Source of the DNA: Mantamonas sphyraenae STR306
Taxonomy: Eukaryota; Protista; CRuMs
Assembly (NCBI GenBank): GCA_026936335.1
Contig: JAPMXV010000031.1
Span: 248,001 to 312,000, forward strand
Reading direction: 5' to 3'
Length of the DNA: 64,000 nucleotides
In this document: positions 47,101-53,481 of the stretch, piece by piece
Layout of the letters: each line of letters opens with the position of its first letter
Position numbering within the stretch: the stretch's first letter is position 1
The notes under the pieces: generated by a model
What the model was told of the DNA's origin: nothing
The model's database searches: none
The model's input: only the letters and a program-made list of their open reading frames with translations
Program-made: the position numbers and the translations under genes

Positions 47101-48617
47101 TTCTGCTCGTCAGACAATTGAACCGCGTTGCTGCTACTGCCGCCTCCGCCACCGCCGCCACCATTGCCACTTTTCTTTTTCGTGCCTGCACTGCCTGTAC
47201 TCTCTTCTTGGTAGCCAAGCATGGACCAAAAGCCCCATTCGTTCTGTGCGGCCACTGGATCGGCCTGCTCCATCATGGTGTCGACCTCCGCCTCGTCCTG
47301 GCCATCTGACGACGACGCAGGTGCATCGGCGAGCTCCTGCTCCTTTCGCAACTGTGCGCGCGCGAGTGTGCGGAAGCGGATGATGTCTTCCAGCTCGTAC
47401 TTCTCGTCCATGGTCTCGACCAGTGCCTGGGCGTAGATGATCTCCTCCTCATTGGGCAACTCCGTGCCTGCCTTTTTCGCCGCCTCCATGCGCGCCTCAA
47501 ACTTGAGGATCTCTTTGTAGTCTTCGGCGTACTTGTCCCTGTCCTTGCGGTAGGAGCGAATAAAGTTCCAGGTGGCGCGTTTGTCGCGTTCACGCATGTC
47601 AAACAGCGTGCAATTGATGGCAAATGCCCACCAGGCCGCTGGATCTGTGCGCACTGTGTCCTCGGGACGGAAGCGACGATACTTGCCTGCCAGCGCATAG
47701 TGCTTCACGTACCCGACAAACGCATTCATGTCGCGAAACTGAGCCTGGTTCATGTGCACGTTGATCTGCTGCACCACAATGTCCATGACGTACTCGGGCA
47801 CATTGAACACCTTGGCACGGTTGATGGTGGAACTCATGGAGGCGTCCACGGGCGCCATGAGATAGCTGAGCGGAGGCAATCCCTCTCCCGGTCGTGCAAT
47901 GTCGCTGCGCAGCAGCTGACACATCTGTTTGGGTGTTTCGTAGTCCAGTGGCTGCACGTCTGTTTGCCAGTACCACGCCAAGTGGCTCATTTGCACCAGT
48001 TTGTGGATGAAATCGGTGTGCTCGTTGACAAACGCCGGCTGGAAGTTGGCGTCGGTGGTCACTGCGCCCAGAGAGTCCAGAGTGAACCCCGTGCGGAAGG
48101 TGTGACCCGGTCGTGAGGTGGAATCCTCATAGCACACGTGGATGTTCTCAAACTTGACCTGCAAGTTGGCCAGAATGGTCTGCGTCAACTTGCTGGTGAA
48201 ACTTTCTTGCTGGGCTGCTTTGGTGCCCTCCTGTGCCGATGAGATGCGTGCCTGTTGCAATGCCTCAAACTCTCGCACCTTGTGCATCTTGTGCTCGTGT
48301 GCTCTGCGGTGTTCCTGCTCGGCGTCAAACTTCACTTCGTCCTGTGGACACGTGTGCAGGTAGATATCCCGAAAGGTGATGGTCACCGCCGAGCTCTGAA
48401 GCGATGCCCATGGAATGGTCATCTTGACGCCGCCAATGACACCCGCCTGTACCACCAGCGGCAGATTCAGCGTGTCCAGCGCCGAAGGACGCAGCGTCAG
48501 CGCGTTCAGCGTTAGGTTGCCGTTCCACACGGCTATGTTGAGTTTCGACACGTCGAGATCCTCCACATACTGCCCCAGATACGTCGTCAGGATGTCCGCA
48601 ACCACGGATTCAAACAT
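35184..48617 (-). CDS. VPS13: VPS13 bridge-like lipid transfer protein (4477 aa, single exon)
   Basis: Chorein N-terminus MFESVVADILTTYLGQYVEDLD..KLNIAVWNG; repeated 'i.AP.iivP' units; WEPIVEPW; VAB repeats; ALGNPVGLVSNLGTGVYEFFYEP; ATG2_C-like Gly-rich helices; C-terminal PH-like region. Confidence 0.96.
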   Translation of the reverse strand: MFESVVADILTTYLGQYVEDLDVSKLNIAVWNGNLTLNALTLRPSALDTLNLPLVVQAGVIGGVKMTIPWASLQSSAVTITFRDIYLHTCPQDEVKFDAEQEHRRAHEHKMHKVREFEALQQARISSAQEGTKAAQQESFTSKLTQTILANLQVKFENIHVCYEDSTSRPGHTFRTGFTLDSLGAVTTDANFQPAFVNEHTDFIHKLVQMSHLAWYWQTDVQPLDYETPKQMCQLLRSDIARPGEGLPPLSYLMAPVDASMSSTINRAKVFNVPEYVMDIVVQQINVHMNQAQFRDMNAFVGYVKHYALAGKYRRFRPEDTVRTDPAAWWAFAINCTLFDMRERDKRATWNFIRSYRKDRDKYAEDYKEILKFEARMEAAKKAGTELPNEEEIIYAQALVETMDEKYELEDIIRFRTLARAQLRKEQELADAPASSSDGQDEAEVDTMMEQADPVAAQNEWGFWSMLGYQEESTGSAGTKKKSGNGGGGGGGGSSSNAVQLSDEQKKEVYRENLDAETEEKSHIPPDYVKVRATFALHQGSLALSGAEHEPIIRIVSGDFAMEFEKLVEGYVLGLFLESLDVYDDYTQDSQFAHMVSSKKSQLDSSTLESVREQTSVEGRSTEMTHASSSTSSSSSSTSSSSDSDSFATADEGVARSSIAAPPNTLFHFIFESEPQNCEADTRLVCRLQPLDIVWSASCIQRIVRFFRAKSRAAATLETITMQNLEAFYERQLSNLEYVMAHHTTVDVQVDIHAPRFLVPQDAVDPETTLLVLDLGQLVVRSGAMADEKRYYDTYDMHLVNIQMLLTPANNPQWQMLREGQGVVDRRAFRDLCLVDNFSIEMTVQRCVLIDYTRLPQTRVNARISQLDFHFDTHKFDAFMDTIDGVWGDDTALGADVSAVGASGSDPFREGSSSSDDDDDDGTMWASAVYSLEQLKPDVIVEEEDEADEEDDNDDDDDDDDDDDDWMTESMVQMHPVENDDDDDDDKEDTETEVSRTDNNTSGVVNVVVDRVHVECTFVIDNISFVVYRDRVKYKLEESQELALVHMLGLGLHYTSRAYDAEASISLKDLFIKDLFEATEEEHQYIAASQVDRVSGNAGAGGIVVDLDQAVSEVSESAGSTELGLTPSSVSEEDKLITFSYHFVSRNSPRYDNVDMKVDMQFDSLWLNCNRDSFSEVLEAVFTSMDIWYSPKHAAAVATGVEADTVAPLQNAGSTDSGTESEASLDGVNSTMHTDGETATVITDVIWPGDIVQVHFTARLNQFTVFLNSEQEPICEVSMHDASMDVRMRDQTQDMQAELGDLRVFDTSGQCADEYRTVLRMDEGQRVQFRYANYDRNEEGRYPGFDSLFELQMGSLTTVYVQSFYDAVSAYFRDGTLLEVYNAWANYAEEITTYAGEDVGRLMKMQLNVEAPQVIVPRNAKHAERILCSLGAIRVENKFEALPKAEGVYMEHIDVGFTRMHASSELHGAASRTSMMDETDVGLTIRRPNMASLPYALFPTLPDFTTHVRIPNMAFDFSQRHFALLMDVGRENLYANTMVSDTLQDDGSDADAKVVQEEGTSHAGAAADRESESATSPPRDKVLSRLELEVERMEVRCTQYGFPEEHVAIACVVLDAFDMQYDTQVYEAVAQFRLADLHIEDLLEGPMYKEEQFRMVASTSPVADMHVQRPRGGGEEGEKGEVSLIRIEYHAHHDDRSPFYDEVDTSVRVHFNTIYFVCNRQTVSALMQLSFDAMDIWFDEAAQSAQDTNGQVEEMPSEAEILPNTEGAGVVALKEGGKHVKDTSDRIGFTVSFTMRAMTIRLNSEGQNIADLCMADTELSMTWRARSTQMAGQLGNFSVHDLTPAGRHHGVFLAVRKASEQVEFLYATYHPLEARMYPGFDALFRVRMPSVKLVYRNVFTLQLGAYFNDGPLLEVYNAWSQAASDSLLENGTMTKMDVMVEQPRVLLPRSSSPEGSKEVLRADMQSIAISSHFRPVDEMGVDLVAPGQRPTYDMLDQVRIDVQGLTLANMYHRYGKGMHLVKQSSLSLSIERPVLPLAPARFPNVSQVRVRLEGEQIRAYFSTLQFESVMGLWQENFGERIAEEAREPTVNAESAEAAVTSSLEGRSSTSAETVPNDYVWMHVACELDKVQVTMTEQTVDTESMTLSGQDVADVHFLGFVMAYDSHQTHDTATFKLHALSIRDLMQELRQPELGRSYVAQSQQRLRHRNESQEEQTTDEAKATAGKGDEEQSLIEVTYAAYMPDSPYFAGALMDVGVEFNQLLLTLNRPSVAMLMRIVFRATDIWFGVPVSGEAAAAVEEQEDVDVVRLKVVANLRTLAIRMQHEGLPIAEVWNSDSQLRVVRRALSMDFRARLGRMSMVDLTPQAHKHQVNLLKQVDQSQMVELEYNTMHPREQAREYPGYGSEFVLRMQSVEILYVHRLWQEVWLYLMDGVLLQPYYDWVGEGEPLPPMFPGAELMRMDIDLDQPVFVVSPDARSQHLLHASMGHISIENSFVRKAGPLRGFEPVTYEVMRVDVSNMHCVTQVSSGAERVPLVVNTDASVRLERPCVDMAQCRLMRLASVLDATVPHVGVQLNQFQYQLLLDIVDGNLSEKPIMLTSRSDDFSLYMEQSSSPSVSSTMGVASSPASPGGVRGGSAQDQAAVADEEKEGHGGEYVQLLQWHMNVHMNSLSLAIADGGFADEEVRPIAELEMLEWDAGWDTWWSGRTKLESSLLRMHISDRRNNGNQFEHLLKPLDDLGGVGNSDPQIFVHCDVGADDSVALSVVINRMRALISAPAFAAIYLFAVQPLGGDATASEPVARPAKVAGSSSTSSSSSSMARRASSSLAEEGVSLDLSQYMLGESMSLDGYLGDGRKRPSLRIKVSITDQEVCFVADEKDAQSRAIVMRTTTLAKYNSTRSPETDVQEQSLSVWITGLELFMCQPNLSVEDGHAIVHPLSITTEFESASGGLHHLGVEMENLDVRVSYKDVRMTLDIVNAFAASLGDTVDSVGRQRNVQRRSTNGNLRLEERSSSALASRSGKGKETMVMVHDTDDSSGDGGDANGKGDEDDERFEFSLECHGMSVLVINDVYGHSTPVLSVNMPVASLQADGTRRAQVCVSRWEVNASFFNFDYTAWEPIVEPWEFTVQFTTAPNPLHIVELTATRPLNVVVSEHAVASLLRTWELWKRDYYTREHDLKRAAFHSYWIENQTGMHVAYTLAEGSSETARAVVTEQLSVLVGSDMDSHVLGDQEMHLLEPGQRAALHMRDTDDILRVRQSKVGGGGVTLDRTVNVVVFRDVERRRVLATLANVPIQRVGHSSYRQGTMRFYANVALEQSSKVLSLRSAVSVHNLGDHHVSMMVARDPERDNVLELADVAPGERVFLPVTDARRGDLLLRPSDQGYGWTQGSSVIGLKGIVQRQHRLIQCLTEDMRSMAKHVYYVRFTQPEGSGRYGCEVQLLPPLVLENLLCHPMQFRVFSIHQDSGSTTEVLNGELAMGEEQCVYMVDLNMPTVVQVSVDGGAHWSTKVPVTLQQRKTVMTTDLVLDDSGSRQRYLKLEKRLRDRAGCRLMFYTQYWLVNETGLMLTYRQHEFKSTAGGQVLTKEAMRSKEPLGFGLKPDSVSRHKIQVRVNKSHWSQSFSGESTGTTGYLSVPDTTVKRTENGAEYVRCYEVAVNIASCSGKFMRSKLVRFLPAFQLVNRSGKKVMCRQSGTSLCVSVEDGATHNFHWPDNGADRQLRMRWGTEYDWSGSFSIHALGETPVKMRVKRTPHRFAVVPVHIEQGRAGTRVVFRAPSKDLIPYRVRNASGLPLKFHQKETDVVEELADGNECFYAWEEPMAPHILCVDFPQFDVHAEYQLDEIDVFRQLRINTGRNRFVRITPRVRADGPVRVLELSMAQSEGDEDGVLVSEKDGEEVVQLNMRLTVAEVGVSLMDARPRELAYLSVLGISATQSHLSNGDVLSEVRVVDMQVDNQLYTAPYATMLAPVSAVGVAGDFLHLSVVKQHQETVNHYRYCSLLMQALRVSMDSLTVLRLWRFADGIAGAVESQPTNSGSSSSSSSSSSSSSSSSSSSSEVMLGGGEEDVDGVRSYVELLQLHPIELVVNFRGVDLSEETGVNPLASVSMTLTDVEDAKVELNALMIEHAFETGEQLRARVMEHYRRNVMREMLFVMGSIDALGNPVGLVSNLGTGVYEFFYEPTKGIVEGPEEFAKGLAKGTKSLLKNTLKGTFSSASKMTGAMSKGMAAISMDAEYLQERERDNRERVGGLGSGVWQGVRGLGKGVMDGVSGLVSAPVDGAMDDGFGGFLEGVGKGLIGVVVKPAAGVLDLASKTTEGISREANRHLGDGEDVERQRRRLPKFVGRDNLVREWNARSAEGAFLLWQVKDDEDEDEVMEALGMAISGGAGEDEPVEEVYEQHWVNGHGEVVMLTSHRLLVLKTNGNVKWMVPLAAVYGVDVREGMLVVRAEVDGRFLVQRVSGDGQGMVVQVLEHLETLVRDS
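36463..36520. repeat. CTG/CTA trinucleotide tract encoding poly-Ser in VPS13
   Basis: A ctgctgctgcta... run is visible on the plus strand. Confidence 0.8.
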
Positions 48618-48756
48618 TCGTGCGCAGTTGGAGCTTTTTGTTTCCGGCGACGGCGCAGGGGTGCAGCAACCACCACCCATGACTCCAAAGATGCATTGGG
48701 AGGCAAGCGAATGGTCAATGGCCTGCCTGCGCAGGTGGATGCAAAGCAAGTTGGAG

Positions 48757-50241
48757 ATGTCGTCGCGAAAGGGAGGCGAGTTGTTGCCGGCGCAGCAAGT
48801 CAACGTGGTGTGGACGCATCTGCGGCACACCCAGTCAAACGTGTCTGCGCATGAGCTGGGTCGCATGTTAAAGGCACAGGGACTTGCAAAGCAGAAGCAT
48901 GTCGACACGTTGGCGTCGCAGGGGAAGGCATTGGAGGAGCTGCCAACCGTGTTGGTTGGCCCTGTCCACACACAAGAGGTGTCCATGAGCTTCCAGTACC
49001 TTCACAGGATGAAACGACGACGTGGAAAGTTGATGCGATTCCTTACACAAGCTCAGATGGTTGTGGTTTGCGTGCAGGCGTTGTCCGAGGCCAAACGTTG
49101 TGGCCGCGCCAAGAACTCGACCACCCTCGACGACATGCTCCTCCTCGCAAGCCAGAGTCGCACGAAACGAGTTGTATTTGTGATGGTCGGCATCGAAGCT
49201 GTCGATTGGAACCTGGAGCCGGGATTCCAGGCCGTTGAGGCCGCGCTCTTCAAAGCCGCCACAACCGCTGGGTTCACACACGTCACCCTGCTTCCTGTCA
49301 ATCGTGATGGAGTTCCGGTGATTTCAGAGACCCTGAACACGGGGTTTGCGGAAACGGGCAACACGCTGGCGGAGGAACTTGGCCGTTTGGCAGCTCCGTG
49401 CGTCTCGGACGTGGAAGACAACAAGGACAAGCCGTTGGTGATGTGTGTGCAGGATGTGATTCAAGTCAGTGGCACAGGCACAGTGCTTCTGTGCGGTGTG
49501 GTGGACGGTGTGTTGCGCAAGGGACAACTGGTGGGGATGTACCCGTCCGAACGCGTCAGCACCGTGCTCAGGATCCGCCACTTTGACCACGACTGTGACG
49601 AAGCGGCACCAGGAATGCAGGTGGGCGTGCAATTGGAGGCATTGCGAATGAGCACTGTGAAGCGGGGGTCGCTGATTGTCGATCCCTTCAACTGCACACG
49701 AAGGGTGTGCACTCGCTTCACCGGTCTCGTACGCATGTGCTCCACACAAAAGTGGCGTTTGCAGCGTTGGGAGAACCCCATGTTGGTGGTGTCGGGCATG
49801 GCCACGGAGATCCGTGTCTTGGCGTTTGAGCGCGAAATCAACTTTTTCTCGGGTCTGCCGGAGCAGCAGCAACATCCTCCCAAGTTCATTCGGGGCAAGA
49901 ATGCTGCGGCTGTGGTTGAGTTTCGCAGCACGCATGTGCCGCTGCTGCTGGAAGCGGGCTTGTCGTGCACTTTGATGGAACTGGATGAGGTCATGGGCAG
50001 CCTGGTTGTGGAAGAATTGCTGGATACGATTGACATTGGATGGAAGGATGAGATGTGGAGCCCGCAAACTCATTTGTTGCATCCAAAGGAGGTGCGCGAG
50101 GCAATCTTTGCGCTGTTGTGCTTGAACCGGCGTCTCTTTGCAGATTCAGGGGACGACGAGGCGTGTAGCACATGGCATGCCCTGCCACAAGAGGTGCTGT
50201 ATCGTGTGTTTGCACATGCGGCGGTGTTGTGGCCGTTGTGA
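48757..50241 (+). CDS. eEF1A-derived pseudo-GTPase with an F-box-like C-terminal tail, paralogue 1
   Basis: Domain II DKPLVMCVQDVIQVSGTGTV...GVLRKG...EAAPGMQVGVQL...VKRG; domain III PKFIRGKNAAAVV; no P-loop; tail WSPQTH...LPQEVLYRVF. Start chosen by alignment with paralogues (alternative ATG 48679). Confidence 0.8.
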   Translation: MSSRKGGELLPAQQVNVVWTHLRHTQSNVSAHELGRMLKAQGLAKQKHVDTLASQGKALEELPTVLVGPVHTQEVSMSFQYLHRMKRRRGKLMRFLTQAQMVVVCVQALSEAKRCGRAKNSTTLDDMLLLASQSRTKRVVFVMVGIEAVDWNLEPGFQAVEAALFKAATTAGFTHVTLLPVNRDGVPVISETLNTGFAETGNTLAEELGRLAAPCVSDVEDNKDKPLVMCVQDVIQVSGTGTVLLCGVVDGVLRKGQLVGMYPSERVSTVLRIRHFDHDCDEAAPGMQVGVQLEALRMSTVKRGSLIVDPFNCTRRVCTRFTGLVRMCSTQKWRLQRWENPMLVVSGMATEIRVLAFEREINFFSGLPEQQQHPPKFIRGKNAAAVVEFRSTHVPLLLEAGLSCTLMELDEVMGSLVVEELLDTIDIGWKDEMWSPQTHLLHPKEVREAIFALLCLNRRLFADSGDDEACSTWHALPQEVLYRVFAHAAVLWPL

Positions 50242-50272
50242 GGGAGGATGCGCACATGGAAGCAGCACTTTG

Positions 50273-51856
50273 ATGTCGATGAGTTCGTCATCGGAACAAG
50301 GTGCGGGCGAAGAGAAAGAACCGTTTCCAAATGCAAATGTCTTCTGGGCACCCTTGTGTGACAAACCGTGGCCAGGAGCAGCACGCACTTTGAGATCCCT
50401 TCTGCTGGCGAGCGAATTCCAACCGACATCGAAGCAAAAAGCGCGTCTTGACATGTTCACCAACAAGTATCCGCACCTACAGGAGCTAGGAACGTTGTAT
50501 TTCGGTCCCGTGTACTCATCCATTCGCACCTTATGTTTCCAGTACGTTCACAATCTGCTCCGGACGCCAACAAAGGCACTTCGCTTTGTGTCAAGTGCCA
50601 ACGTGGGTGTGCTGTGCGTTCGAGCGAGCGATTGTGTGGATGCAGCTGGGTTTCGCCGCAACGGTTTTGCCGGTATCACGGCACAGATGTACGTGTACGG
50701 GATTCGTTCACTCGTGGTGCTTGTGTGCGACGTGGAAGAGTTGGCGTGGAAACACGACACCTGGGACGAGCTCCAAACGGGAGTGGAAACCCGTGTGAAG
50801 AAGGCTTGCATCCAAGACTATGCCATTGTGCCTGTGGACGAAGATGGGACGCCATTGATGTCCGAAACATTGGTGGACGACTTCCAAACGATGGAGGGCG
50901 GCAAACAGGCCATTCTCGACACAATCGACTCGTTCAAAATGATGGGGGGCCAACTTCACAGACGTTCTCAGCGTCCCATGCTATCGTGTGTCCACGATGT
51001 CGTACAAGTGAGCGGATGCGGAACCGTTTTGATTTGCGGAATTGTTCAGGGCAGCCTCCGACGAGGCTCTCAGGTGGGATTGGTCCCAGCTGAGCTGGTG
51101 GCCACCGTGGACAGCATTCAGTTCTTTGGGAAGGATGTGGAGGAAGCCACCGTGGGTATGCATGTGGGACTACGGCTGGAAGGACTGCGACGGGACAAGG
51201 TGGAGCGTGGGATGATGGTGGTGGATCCCCTTGCAAAGCAGCCAATGGAGCTGTGCACTCGCTTCCGGGGCAACCTGATGGTGTGTTCTTCGTCCGGATA
51301 TCAGGGCCGACAGGCAGGGTTTCGACCCATTCTTTCTTTGGGTGGCTTTCGAACGGAGGTGAAACTCGTCAAGCTCCTTCAACTGCTTGAAAGGGGAACG
51401 TTGAAACCGATGGAAGACAATCCACAGAGGCTGCCACGCAATGCGCTGGCTTCCGTGGAAATCGAGATGGTCAGGGATCCAGCAATGCTTGTGGCGTCCA
51501 GCGACGACAATCACACACCAGCCAACTCGAATTTCATTTTGTTCGACAGAGAGATGCTGTACGCCATGGGCCGGTGTGAAGAGGTGCTCGAATCATCGCG
51601 GCCGGTGTGGAAACCCGCTGCTTGGACGCCAGAGACGCACCACCTGCACAGCAAGTCACTGAAGGACGCCTTGTTCACTCTTCTGTGCATCAACACCCAT
51701 GCTTTCTCCCTCGAGACTCACGAGGATGGGGGTGATGAAGAAGAAGTGAGCGAAGACGACGCGGACGACCCCTTCCACAGCTCCACGTGGAAGCAACTGC
51801 CACAAGAGGTGCTGTTTCGAGTGTTTGTCCATGCTGGTGTGTTATGGCCAGAGTAG
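50273..51856 (+). CDS. eEF1A-derived pseudo-GTPase with an F-box-like C-terminal tail, paralogue 2
   Basis: Same architecture; G4 region YGIRSLVVLVCDVE; domain III GFRPIL...KPMEDNPQRL; tail WTPETH...LPQEVLFRVF. Confidence 0.82.
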   Translation: MSMSSSSEQGAGEEKEPFPNANVFWAPLCDKPWPGAARTLRSLLLASEFQPTSKQKARLDMFTNKYPHLQELGTLYFGPVYSSIRTLCFQYVHNLLRTPTKALRFVSSANVGVLCVRASDCVDAAGFRRNGFAGITAQMYVYGIRSLVVLVCDVEELAWKHDTWDELQTGVETRVKKACIQDYAIVPVDEDGTPLMSETLVDDFQTMEGGKQAILDTIDSFKMMGGQLHRRSQRPMLSCVHDVVQVSGCGTVLICGIVQGSLRRGSQVGLVPAELVATVDSIQFFGKDVEEATVGMHVGLRLEGLRRDKVERGMMVVDPLAKQPMELCTRFRGNLMVCSSSGYQGRQAGFRPILSLGGFRTEVKLVKLLQLLERGTLKPMEDNPQRLPRNALASVEIEMVRDPAMLVASSDDNHTPANSNFILFDREMLYAMGRCEEVLESSRPVWKPAAWTPETHHLHSKSLKDALFTLLCINTHAFSLETHEDGGDEEEVSEDDADDPFHSSTWKQLPQEVLFRVFVHAGVLWPE

Positions 51857-51909
51857 TGTGGCCAGAGTAGTGTGGAGATGTCGCCCCTTGGGGCCAAAAC
51901 AAACTGCAG

Positions 51910-53481
51910 ATGTCGTCGTCCACGGACGAGAAGGAGGAGCGAGAACCCTTCCGCCATGTCAATGTTCTCTGGGCCCCTGTGGCTTTGCAACCTTGGCATG
52001 GTGCAGCCCAACAGTTGCGGGCTCTGCTGCTGGACAGCGACTACACCGCGTCGCCGCAGCAAAAGTCCCGCTTGTTCACCATCTACCAGCAGAATCCCTT
52101 TCTGCATGAGCTGGCATCGGTGACGTTTGGTCCGGTGCACTCGTCCAACCACACCCTGAGCATCCAGTATGTCCACAAGCTGTGCACACGGCCCACAAAG
52201 GCGCTGCGCTTTGTGTGCAGTGCAAACGTGTGCGTGCTTTGCGTGCGTGCCAGTGAGTGCACGGACGACTTGCTGAAGGGCCGATTTCTGCGATTGTTCA
52301 CACGTACGGTCTCCGAGCTGCACGTGGCAGGCATCAACTCCCTGGTGGTGGTTGTGTGCGACACCGAGACGGGCCTGTGGGCGGAAACCACGTGGACCCA
52401 ACTGGAGGAGACTCTGAACCAGCGATGCCAGCGTGCCGATATCAAAGATCATTGTGTGCTGGCGACGGACGTGCAGGGAGTTCCTGTGACGCCGGATGCG
52501 GACGAGTTTGTTCCGGCCGAACGAGGCCTGGGCGAGATCCTCCATGCCATCGACACGCGCAAGCGTGTGTCATCACAACTGTACAGACGGTTGGCACGAC
52601 CGTTGCTGATGTGCGTGCAAGATGTCTTTGAGGTGAGCGGATGCGGAACAGTGCTGATTTGCGGAATCGCCCAGGGCAGCCTTCGTCGAGGCTCGCAGCT
52701 GGGATTGGTCCCAGCCGAGCTGATGGCCACTGTGGACAGCATTCATTTCTTTGGGAAGGATGTGGAGGAAGCCACCGTGGGCATGCAGGTGGGAGTTCGT
52801 CTGGAAGGGCTTCGACGGGACGATGTGAAGCGTGGGATGATGCTCGTGGATCCACATGCCGAGGAGCCCATGCAGCTCTGCACTCGCATGCGATGCATGC
52901 TGTTGACATTCTCCATGCCTGGGTGGAGAGGGGCAGGCCCAGGACTCAAGCCGATCGCGACACTTGGTGGCAACCGCACAGAGGTTCGCCTGGACAAGCT
53001 GTTGCAGCTGATGGACGTTCAAACACAAAAGGTCACTGAAAGCAACCCTGAACGAATCCCCAGGTATCGAAGCCTCTCCATGTGTGAGTTTTCCACAGTG
53101 CGCAACGCACTCATCGCCTGGCCCATGGACAACAGCAATCACACCCCTGTCACAAGTCACATCAACCTCTACATCAGTGAAGAGCTGTTTGGCCTCATGC
53201 GATGTGAAGAGGTGCTCGAATCGTCTCCACCTCAATGGAAGTCCGCCGCCTGGGCTCCGGAAACCCACCAGCGGTACAGCAAGCCGCTGAGGGACGCTGT
53301 GTTTACCCTGTTGTGCATCAACACCCATGCTTTCTCCATCGAGACACACGAGGAGGGATGTGAGGACGAAGAAATGAGCGAAAACGACTCGGACGACCCC
53401 TTCCACAGCTCCACGTGGAAGCAACTGCCACAAGAAGTGCTGTTTCGAGTTTTCATGCACACGGCCGTGTTGTGGAGGTAG
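51910..53481 (+). CDS. eEF1A-derived pseudo-GTPase with an F-box-like C-terminal tail, paralogue 3
   Basis: Same architecture; HVNVLWAP occupies the HINIVVIGH position; tail WAPETH...LPQEVLFRVF. Confidence 0.82.
   Translation: MSSSTDEKEEREPFRHVNVLWAPVALQPWHGAAQQLRALLLDSDYTASPQQKSRLFTIYQQNPFLHELASVTFGPVHSSNHTLSIQYVHKLCTRPTKALRFVCSANVCVLCVRASECTDDLLKGRFLRLFTRTVSELHVAGINSLVVVVCDTETGLWAETTWTQLEETLNQRCQRADIKDHCVLATDVQGVPVTPDADEFVPAERGLGEILHAIDTRKRVSSQLYRRLARPLLMCVQDVFEVSGCGTVLICGIAQGSLRRGSQLGLVPAELMATVDSIHFFGKDVEEATVGMQVGVRLEGLRRDDVKRGMMLVDPHAEEPMQLCTRMRCMLLTFSMPGWRGAGPGLKPIATLGGNRTEVRLDKLLQLMDVQTQKVTESNPERIPRYRSLSMCEFSTVRNALIAWPMDNSNHTPVTSHINLYISEELFGLMRCEEVLESSPPQWKSAAWAPETHQRYSKPLRDAVFTLLCINTHAFSIETHEEGCEDEEMSENDSDDPFHSSTWKQLPQEVLFRVFMHTAVLWR

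Follow-up and report, generated by a model that had tools for sequence, protein, structure and literature searches.

HBS1 and Ski7 are EF1A-like factors of mRNA surveillance, Ski7 being GTPase-like with impaired hydrolysis, and to our knowledge neither carries an E3 (ubiquitin ligase) module. F-box proteins, for their part, combine with varied receptor domains, of which Kelch and leucine-rich repeats (LRR) are the usual ones, and ankyrin repeats are the recognition domain of the poxvirus ankyrin-PRANC proteins, in which a truncated C-terminal F-box binds SKP1. Mantamonas is a genus of small marine flagellates of the CRuMs group, a deep-branching lineage of eukaryotes. Here we describe three tandem paralogous genes (P1, P2 and P3) located in a 64,000-nucleotide stretch of the Mantamonas sphyraenae STR306 genome (the window; assembly GCA_026936335.1, contig JAPMXV010000031.1, positions 248,001 to 312,000 of the forward strand). 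Their products are almost certainly pseudo-GTPases derived from EF1A, and taken as a whole the evidence makes it probable that they are substrate receptors of SCF-type (SKP1-cullin-F-box) ligases, composed of an EF1A-derived body and a predicted SKP1-docking tail. Genome searches covered 25,061,354 bases in 78 contigs; the M. sphyraenae FALCON assembly is reported to comprise 25.06 Mb in 78 contigs, with a GC content of 59.19% (PMC10492846).

Like eEF1A and archaeal EF1A, the P1-P3 proteins have all three EF1A domains in order and a closed domain arrangement, and they fall on the eEF1A side of the inferred tree. Unlike them, they lack the G1, G3 and G4 motifs, share only about 16-20% identity with them and carry an extra C-terminal tail of approximately 80 residues. 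As in HBS1 and Ski7, an EF1A-like body appears to have been reused outside elongation, and HBS1L is the best sequence match of the trio in the PDB, but HBS1 keeps its GTP motifs and the trio lies outside the HBS1/eRF3 clade. The tail resembles the PRANC box in being C-terminal to the recognition domain, in its shortened form around an LPxE helix and in having ankyrin repeats among its partners, whereas it differs in having no significant PRANC match, in placing a helix (helix A) upstream of the LPxE helix (helix B) across an acidic loop of variable length, and in ending about eight residues past helix B. With canonical Kelch and LRR F-box proteins it shares the helix-1 signature, the predicted site on SKP1 and the same kinds of partner domain, yet it lacks F-box helices 2 and 3, follows the receptor domain instead of preceding it and remains below all Pfam cut-offs. 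Within the same genome, tandem clusters on contigs 4 and 72 likewise unite an EF1A-like body with an E3 module; compared to them, the trio has shorter proteins that lack every one of the motifs and bear the short tail, whereas the contig-4 genes keep G1, G3 and a full F-box, and contig 72 encodes a U-box. An earlier reading of this DNA made from its letters alone (hereafter, the sequence-only reading) knew of no described family with this architecture, and none emerged from the literature and databases searched: the literature searched returned neither eEF1A pseudo-GTPases nor EF-Tu domains combined with an F-box, and neither an EF1A-fold pseudo-GTPase as candidate E3 receptor nor a putative SKP1 box of two helices in which the additional helix lies upstream was found.

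The three genes are arranged as follows:

48757..50241, plus strand: P1, 494 amino acids (aa), EF1A-fold pseudo-GTPase with C-terminal tail, the most divergent copy; intact open reading frame (ORF) from ATG to TGA; Pfam GTP_EFTU_D2 at 34 bits.
50273..51856, plus strand: P2, 527 aa, EF1A-fold pseudo-GTPase with C-terminal tail; intact ORF; modeled with AlphaFold2 and compared with Foldseek.
51910..53481, plus strand: P3, 523 aa, EF1A-fold pseudo-GTPase with C-terminal tail; intact ORF; 57% identical to P2.

All three run in the same direction, each from ATG to stop, with intergenic gaps of 31 bp (50242-50272) and 53 bp (51857-51909), so that the three intact paralogues of about 500 aa described by the sequence-only reading were confirmed in their coordinates, starts, stops and lengths. 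Since gaps of this size leave almost no space for separate promoters and terminators, co-transcription or promoters within the upstream gene are possible. Immediately 3' of P2, a 14-bp unit that includes the P2 stop codon, TGTGGCCAGAGTAG, is present as a tandem duplicate (51843-51870). The paralogues align over their full length, with P1 being 35% and 34% identical to P2 and P3, respectively. The ratio of nonsynonymous to synonymous substitution rates (dN/dS, Nei-Gojobori) is 0.275 between P2 and P3, falling to 0.24 in domains II-III and to 0.18 in the tail, and lies between 0.32 and 0.42 for P1 against P2 and P3, where synonymous sites are close to saturation. Overall, dN/dS thus ranges from 0.18 to 0.42; the lowest value is that of the tail and, within the body, domains II and III are the most conserved. 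The GC content at third codon positions (GC3) is 0.62-0.70 in the trio and 0.72 in a neighboring gene. Together, the intact ORFs, the dN/dS values and GC3 indicate that these are maintained genes under purifying selection, rather than decaying copies.

The relationship of the body to EF1A is evident at both the sequence and the structure level. Pfam GTP_EFTU_D2 scores above its cut-off in all three proteins, and a PDB search with a profile of the trio matched, within profile positions 103-402, HBS1L best (2.8e-22) and then yeast eEF1A (1.4e-20). The eEF1A-matching segments singled out by the sequence-only reading (ADxAVLVV-like, LGVxQLIV-like and EDNPxxL) align as proposed. An AlphaFold2 model of P2, computed from an alignment of 43 EF1A-type matches, reached a mean predicted local distance difference test (pLDDT) of 82.3 and a predicted template modeling score (pTM) of 0.79. 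The Foldseek comparison that had been suggested as a check matched this model to a complete three-domain EF1A, the archaeal EF1A-GTP bound to Pelota (3wxm_A), with an E value of 4e-30 and a TM-score of 0.80 by target over approximately 460 columns. Further matches were to ribosome-bound eEF1A, HBS1L and eRF3, with 8g60 and 9bdp among the best, whereas GDP-form structures yielded a TM-score of only about 0.47. The difference between the GTP and GDP forms indicates that all three domains of the model are in the closed, GTP-like arrangement, a property of the P2 model that we regard as a hint. On P2, the body is divided as follows:

50273..50968, plus strand: degenerate G domain, aa 1-232, with fold kept and G1, G3 and G4 motifs gone (beta-alpha structure in the model; structural alignment; motif scan).
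50981..51226, plus strand: domain II beta-barrel, aa 237-318 (Pfam PF03144 over aa 250-316, its 32.9 bits exceeding the cut-off of 30.3).
51251..51598, plus strand: domain III beta-barrel, aa 327-442 (PF22594, 25.4 bits, slightly below the cut-off of 27; PDB profile and structure alignment).

The domain III models (PF22594/PF03143) give 25.4 bits in P2, 14 bits in P3 and no match in P1, and the region aligns to domain III of EF1A in both the PDB profile search and Foldseek. Domain II retains QDV, the signature of the aminoacyl pocket, as well as the GxGTV strand, and GDNVG is changed to GM[QH]VG. The nucleotide-binding motifs, on the other hand, are lost while the fold is kept. A motif scan of the first 240 residues of P1, P2 and P3 detected neither GxxxxGK[ST] nor [NT]KxD, and DxxG is absent from the homologous place in all three proteins, with DxxG strings occurring at non-homologous places only. 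In an alignment to a hidden Markov model built from the reference sequences only, the G4 motif NKMD is replaced by VGIE, CDVE (in P2) and CDTE. For the first 100 residues or so, sequence gives no alignment to G1-G3, but in the P2 model they form the beta-alpha units of the first half of the G domain. The loss of G1, G3 and G4 reported by the sequence-only reading is therefore borne out at every homologous position, and the combination of a retained three-domain EF1A fold with missing nucleotide-binding motifs identifies the trio, with very little doubt, as EF1A-derived pseudo-GTPases.

Homology searches revealed no orthologues of these proteins. A word-indexed search with P2 returned no match, the exact P1, P2 and P3 proteins are absent from a collection of 15 billion proteins, and a profile search run exhaustively against 1.84 billion representative proteins detected no orthologue, with nothing below 1e-30 and a best match at 6.7e-26. 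The latter and the other matches inspected are ordinary eEF1A/HBS1-type GTPases with an intact GTP_EFTU domain, none of which covers the N-terminus or the tail, and nine of the longest proteins within the best 150 profile matches were all ordinary GTPases without E3 domains. A protein search for SKP1 likewise returned no Mantamonas sequence, which, together with the absence of the exact trio proteins, suggests that the Mantamonas proteome is probably missing from the databases; its close relatives may also be unsampled in those searched. To place the trio among translation GTPases, we inferred a quick IQ-TREE phylogeny (LG+C20) on the genome's own paralogues and 43 references, with long branches. 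On this tree, the trio forms a clade (support 100) on the eEF1A/aEF1A side (support 91), and the HBS1/eRF3 clade, which includes genes on contigs 49 and 54, is set apart with a Shimodaira-Hasegawa-like approximate likelihood ratio (SH-aLRT) of 97. An HBS1 origin is hence not favored, since the trio is placed outside that clade, and descent from eEF1A is, given the long branches, likely rather than certain as judged from sequence phylogeny. Contigs 41 and 55 still carry ordinary eEF1A genes. The genome also contains, on contig 18, an inverted pair of divergent eEF1A genes at 28.9-29.9 kb and 37.8-38.9 kb (one copy at L004:1225-2583, minus strand), which score 430 bits to yeast eEF1A and present a cysteine in place of the switch-II histidine (DAPGCRDF).

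The tail of about 80 aa follows a constant order in the three proteins: a W-x-P-E-x-H segment, helix A (FRxxVFxLL-like), an acidic loop of variable length and helix B ([FW]-x-W-x-x-L-P-x-E-V-L-x-R-V-F-x-H), with the protein ending about eight residues further. The common tail motifs pointed out in the sequence-only reading are present in P1, P2 and P3 alike:

50029..50238, plus strand: P1 tail, with a shorter acidic loop (alignment; own-genome profile search, E 1.2e-26).
51605..51853, plus strand: P2 tail, aa 445-527, with helix A at aa ~460-484, the acidic loop, and helix B (LPQEVLFRVF) at aa ~506-524 (alignments).
53230..53478, plus strand: P3 tail (alignment; 74% identical to the P2 tail, dN/dS 0.18).

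The P2 and P3 tails are more alike than the rest of these genes (74% aa identity and a synonymous divergence, dS, of 0.75, as compared to 57% and 1.3), an excess likeness consistent with either patchy homogenization or stronger constraint. A genome-wide search for the tail, as had been proposed, demonstrated that the module is not restricted to the trio but recurs in at least 50 other genes. A profile built on eight tails yielded 72 matches in the genome at E ≤ 0.1, about 50 of which span nearly the whole module. Many genes end with it, a few carry it internally, and in the latter the ORF beyond it shows nothing like F-box helices 2 and 3. Besides EF1A-like bodies, its carriers include Kelch propellers, LRR_6 repeats, ankyrin repeats and LCCL domains. 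The presence of the same tail on Kelch, LRR_6, ankyrin and LCCL, the usual repertoire of F-box receptors, argues for a role of the trio as SCF receptors.

Comparison with canonical F-boxes located this likeness precisely. When 29 tails were compared by hhalign to 11 canonical F-box-like domains encoded in this genome, the match had a probability of 83.5% (E 8e-6) over 21 columns that correspond exactly to F-box helix 1. The score (32.0) compares with a maximum of 13.6 in 100 column shuffles and with 9.0 for the reversed alignment, and helix B is thus a look-alike of F-box helix 1 well above noise. Among the same 29 tails, the four commonest families in weak Pfam matches are F-box-like (seven tails), F-box_5 (four), F-box (four) and PRANC (three), with the PRANC model (PF09372) reaching at best an E value of 0.02, below its cut-off. 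An ESM Atlas feature search with the tail gave a best score of 0.84, under the useful range. A BC-box or SOCS-box assignment of helix A was rejected by eye, the [APST]-L-x-x-x-[CSA] spacing being unmet. The tails do not contain a complete three-helix F-box (approximately 45 residues, scoring above the PF00646 or PF12937 cut-off), and by the features that define the family the tail is not, judging from its sequence, an F-box. The F-box-like character ascribed to the tail by the sequence-only reading consequently holds for the LPxE likeness to helix 1 and fails for helices 2 and 3.

The genome encodes the parts of an SCF ligase: besides SKP1, there are 13 matches to cullins, and canonical F-box-like domains number more than 70. 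The native SKP1 gene (contig 35, L020:700-1660) is fragmented into very short exons (at least four), whereas many large genes nearby have none. Located 4.5 kb upstream of it, a divergent SKP1 paralogue (contig 35, L021:1354-1758, plus strand) scores 53.5 bits to PF01466, as compared to 104.9 for SKP1, and carries an acidic, lysine-rich C-terminal extension; this paralogue is a possible dedicated partner of the short-tail family. We modeled the complex of P2 residues 436-527 with a heterologous full-length SKP1 (159 aa) that is 87% identical to the native C-terminal exon. The interface score from aligned errors (ipSAE) was 0.84 in three of three runs and 0.01 in the best of three controls, the mark used for this score being reached by 51 of 78 solved complexes and by 2 of 108 mismatched pairs. 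The runs share at least 89% of their contacts, and the pLDDT of the partner is at least 69. Predicted contacts involve SKP1 residues 92-158, which we take from the Skp1-Skp2 structure to be the C-terminal helices that hold the F-box, and P2 residues 453-457, 462-477 (helix A), 503-513 and 516-527 (helix B). The recruitment of SKP1 proposed in the sequence-only reading is therefore supported in silico, with both helices predicted at the F-box site, and the model supports binding in which the tail would fill the F-box groove of SKP1 and helix A would lie where helices 2 and 3 of an F-box are expected.

The association of EF1A-like bodies with ligase modules extends beyond the window, to two further loci of the same genome:

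Contig 4, about 172.6-182.1 kb (L078:2185-5298, L078:5628-8708, L079:614-3610): three tandem genes of approximately 1000 aa, EF1A-like with an F-box (Pfam).
Contig 72, L065:1827-3749, minus strand: EF1A-like ORF with a U-box, 640 aa (PF04564, E 4.4e-19).
Contig 72, L065:4215-5249, minus strand: degenerate EF1A-like ORF of 344 aa with no recognizable E3 module, just upstream of the U-box ORF.

The contig-4 genes present GTP_EFTU and eEF1A_C above their cut-offs, together with canonical F-box-like domains (E 6e-13, 6e-12 and 3e-10). G1 and G3 are kept (the latter as DxPG in all three), with the P-loop encoded in an upstream exon in two of the three genes (e.g., L078:5243-5629) and in the main ORF in the third, and G4 reads NRLD, TRLD or THLD. 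The 640-aa protein of contig 72 has no NKxD motif, and its EF1A-like body, with domains II and III, is joined to a low-complexity linker and the U-box; a word-indexed search for orthologues of this U-box fusion returned only five ordinary EF-Tu/EF1A GTPases. The contig-4 and contig-72 clusters each form, like the window trio, a clade with support 100. A tree constrained to hold all eight EF1A-like proteins together was not rejected (log-likelihood 10.5 above that of the free quick tree; approximately unbiased test, p-AU 0.657), a grouping to which long-branch attraction could contribute. This genome hence joins EF1A-like bodies to three ligase-type modules: the short tail, the F-box and the U-box. 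Their fusion to canonical F-box and U-box domains makes an E3 role of the trio much more plausible, and the three-module pattern, whether of single or repeated origin, would be hard to explain unless the body is a recognition or docking part for ligases.

On the 5' side of the trio, the adjacent gene encodes VPS13 in divergent orientation, with its true start (MFESVV...) at 48617 on the minus strand:

48618..48756, no strand: divergent gap of 139 bp between the VPS13 and P1 starts (conserved VPS13 N-terminus inside a long minus-strand ORF).

The mechanism that best accommodates these results starts from lineage-specific descendants of eEF1A that keep the three-domain fold and have lost the nucleotide-binding motifs. 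The tail, with its helix A, acidic loop and helix B, would dock on SKP1 as a SKP1-docking box, and the nucleotide-free EF1A-fold body, chiefly through domains II and III, would provide the target-recognition surface of an SCF-type cullin-RING ligase. The targets may be the site on the ribosome where such factors bind, or the partners of EF1A-type factors, both being guesses. The sequence-only reading had reached a similar interpretation, of which the EF1A derivation, the dead motifs, the likeness to helix 1 and the in silico docking on SKP1 stand, but not the assignment of the tail to the F-box family proper; the roles in ribosome quality control or as decoys that it proposed are conjectures. 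Several results weigh against the SCF-receptor interpretation. The P1-P3 tails match no Pfam family, and none of the 29 tails reaches a Pfam cut-off, the best E values being 0.015-0.05. F-box helices 2 and 3 are missing from the tail, and helix A has no detectable counterpart. A circularly permuted F-box, in which helix B would have moved ahead of helix A, was considered as well, and was dropped at the sequence level because no alignment to helices 2 and 3 was obtained. A PDB profile search with the 29 tails gave chance matches only (E > 0.6), and structure searches with the tail model returned nothing in Foldseek and, in a wide VIA search, generic helical hairpins with a best Z of 4.4. The SKP1 in the complex model is heterologous, having been chosen because the native gene lies in short exons. 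Finally, the complex score may stem from the predictor's memory of SKP1-F-box structures, cued by the LPxE helix.

In the most credible alternative, the trio are equally EF1A-derived pseudo-GTPases whose tail, however, would be a hairpin for interaction or dimerization that is peculiar to this lineage and does not bind SKP1. Its partner might instead be Elongin C or some other BTB-fold adaptor, the divergent SKP1 paralogue or something unrelated, and the proteins would act as scaffolds of another pathway. A tail that lies below every family cut-off and lacks F-box helices 2 and 3 fits this explanation, and so do the generic fold of the tail in isolation, which AlphaFold2 predicts as a plain helical hairpin (pLDDT 74.7), and the presence of a divergent SKP1-like gene close to SKP1. 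Nevertheless, this alternative does not account for the separation of the SKP1 complex from its controls, with both helices at the F-box site, for a helix-1 likeness that far exceeds that of shuffled alignments, for the combination of the tail with Kelch, LRR and ankyrin domains as in F-box and PRANC proteins, or for the EF1A-like bodies that carry a true F-box or U-box elsewhere in the genome. We consider it unlikely, if still a serious contender; were it correct, the trio would remain an orphan, selectively maintained pseudo-GTPase family, of local interest only.

A second alternative dispenses with the ligase: the trio would be inert mimics of EF1A, sequestering its partners or competing for them (eEF1B, aminoacyl-tRNA, actin, Pelota/eRF1-like factors or effectors directed at EF1A), and the tail would serve only for localization or turnover. 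The closed GTP-like model of P2 and the conservation of domains II and III above the rest of the body are in line with such mimicry, but it leaves unexplained both the occurrence of the same tail on dozens of unrelated receptor-type proteins and the F-box and U-box modules on the other EF1A-like bodies, and we deem it improbable. That the trio are functionless, decaying tandem duplicates of an EF1A gene, as the loss of catalytic motifs and the lack of an orthologue outside this genome in the databases searched might suggest, is very hard to credit for three ORFs of about 500 codons that remain intact despite saturated synonymous sites, with dN/dS well below 1 and lowest in the tail, GC3 like that of the neighboring gene and a confidently predicted fold.

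The reading of the trio as SCF-type receptors can be extended, more tentatively, to the whole set of EF1A-like fusions. Mantamonas might possess ligases of both the SCF and the U-box type that operate by translation-factor mimicry, with an EF1A body locked in the closed, GTP-like form and independent of nucleotide, directed at the ribosomal factor-binding site or at partners of EF1A-type factors. In this extension, which we put forward as a speculative possibility, the tail would represent a new class of SKP1-binding box, reduced to a minimum and with F-box helices 2 and 3 replaced by a helix located upstream. If true, it would amount to a previously unseen route of translation-coupled ubiquitination.

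For the SCF-receptor reading itself, the two-helix tail could broaden the definition of SKP1-binding boxes and help uncover hidden F-box-like proteins in other protists. The trio would also provide a natural case of a pseudo-GTPase acting as an E3 receptor, and a handle on what a surface shaped like EF1A can recognize in the absence of nucleotide. If this reading is correct, a core translation factor would have been turned into the target-recognition part of ubiquitin ligases at least three times in this protist, or once, followed by module swapping.

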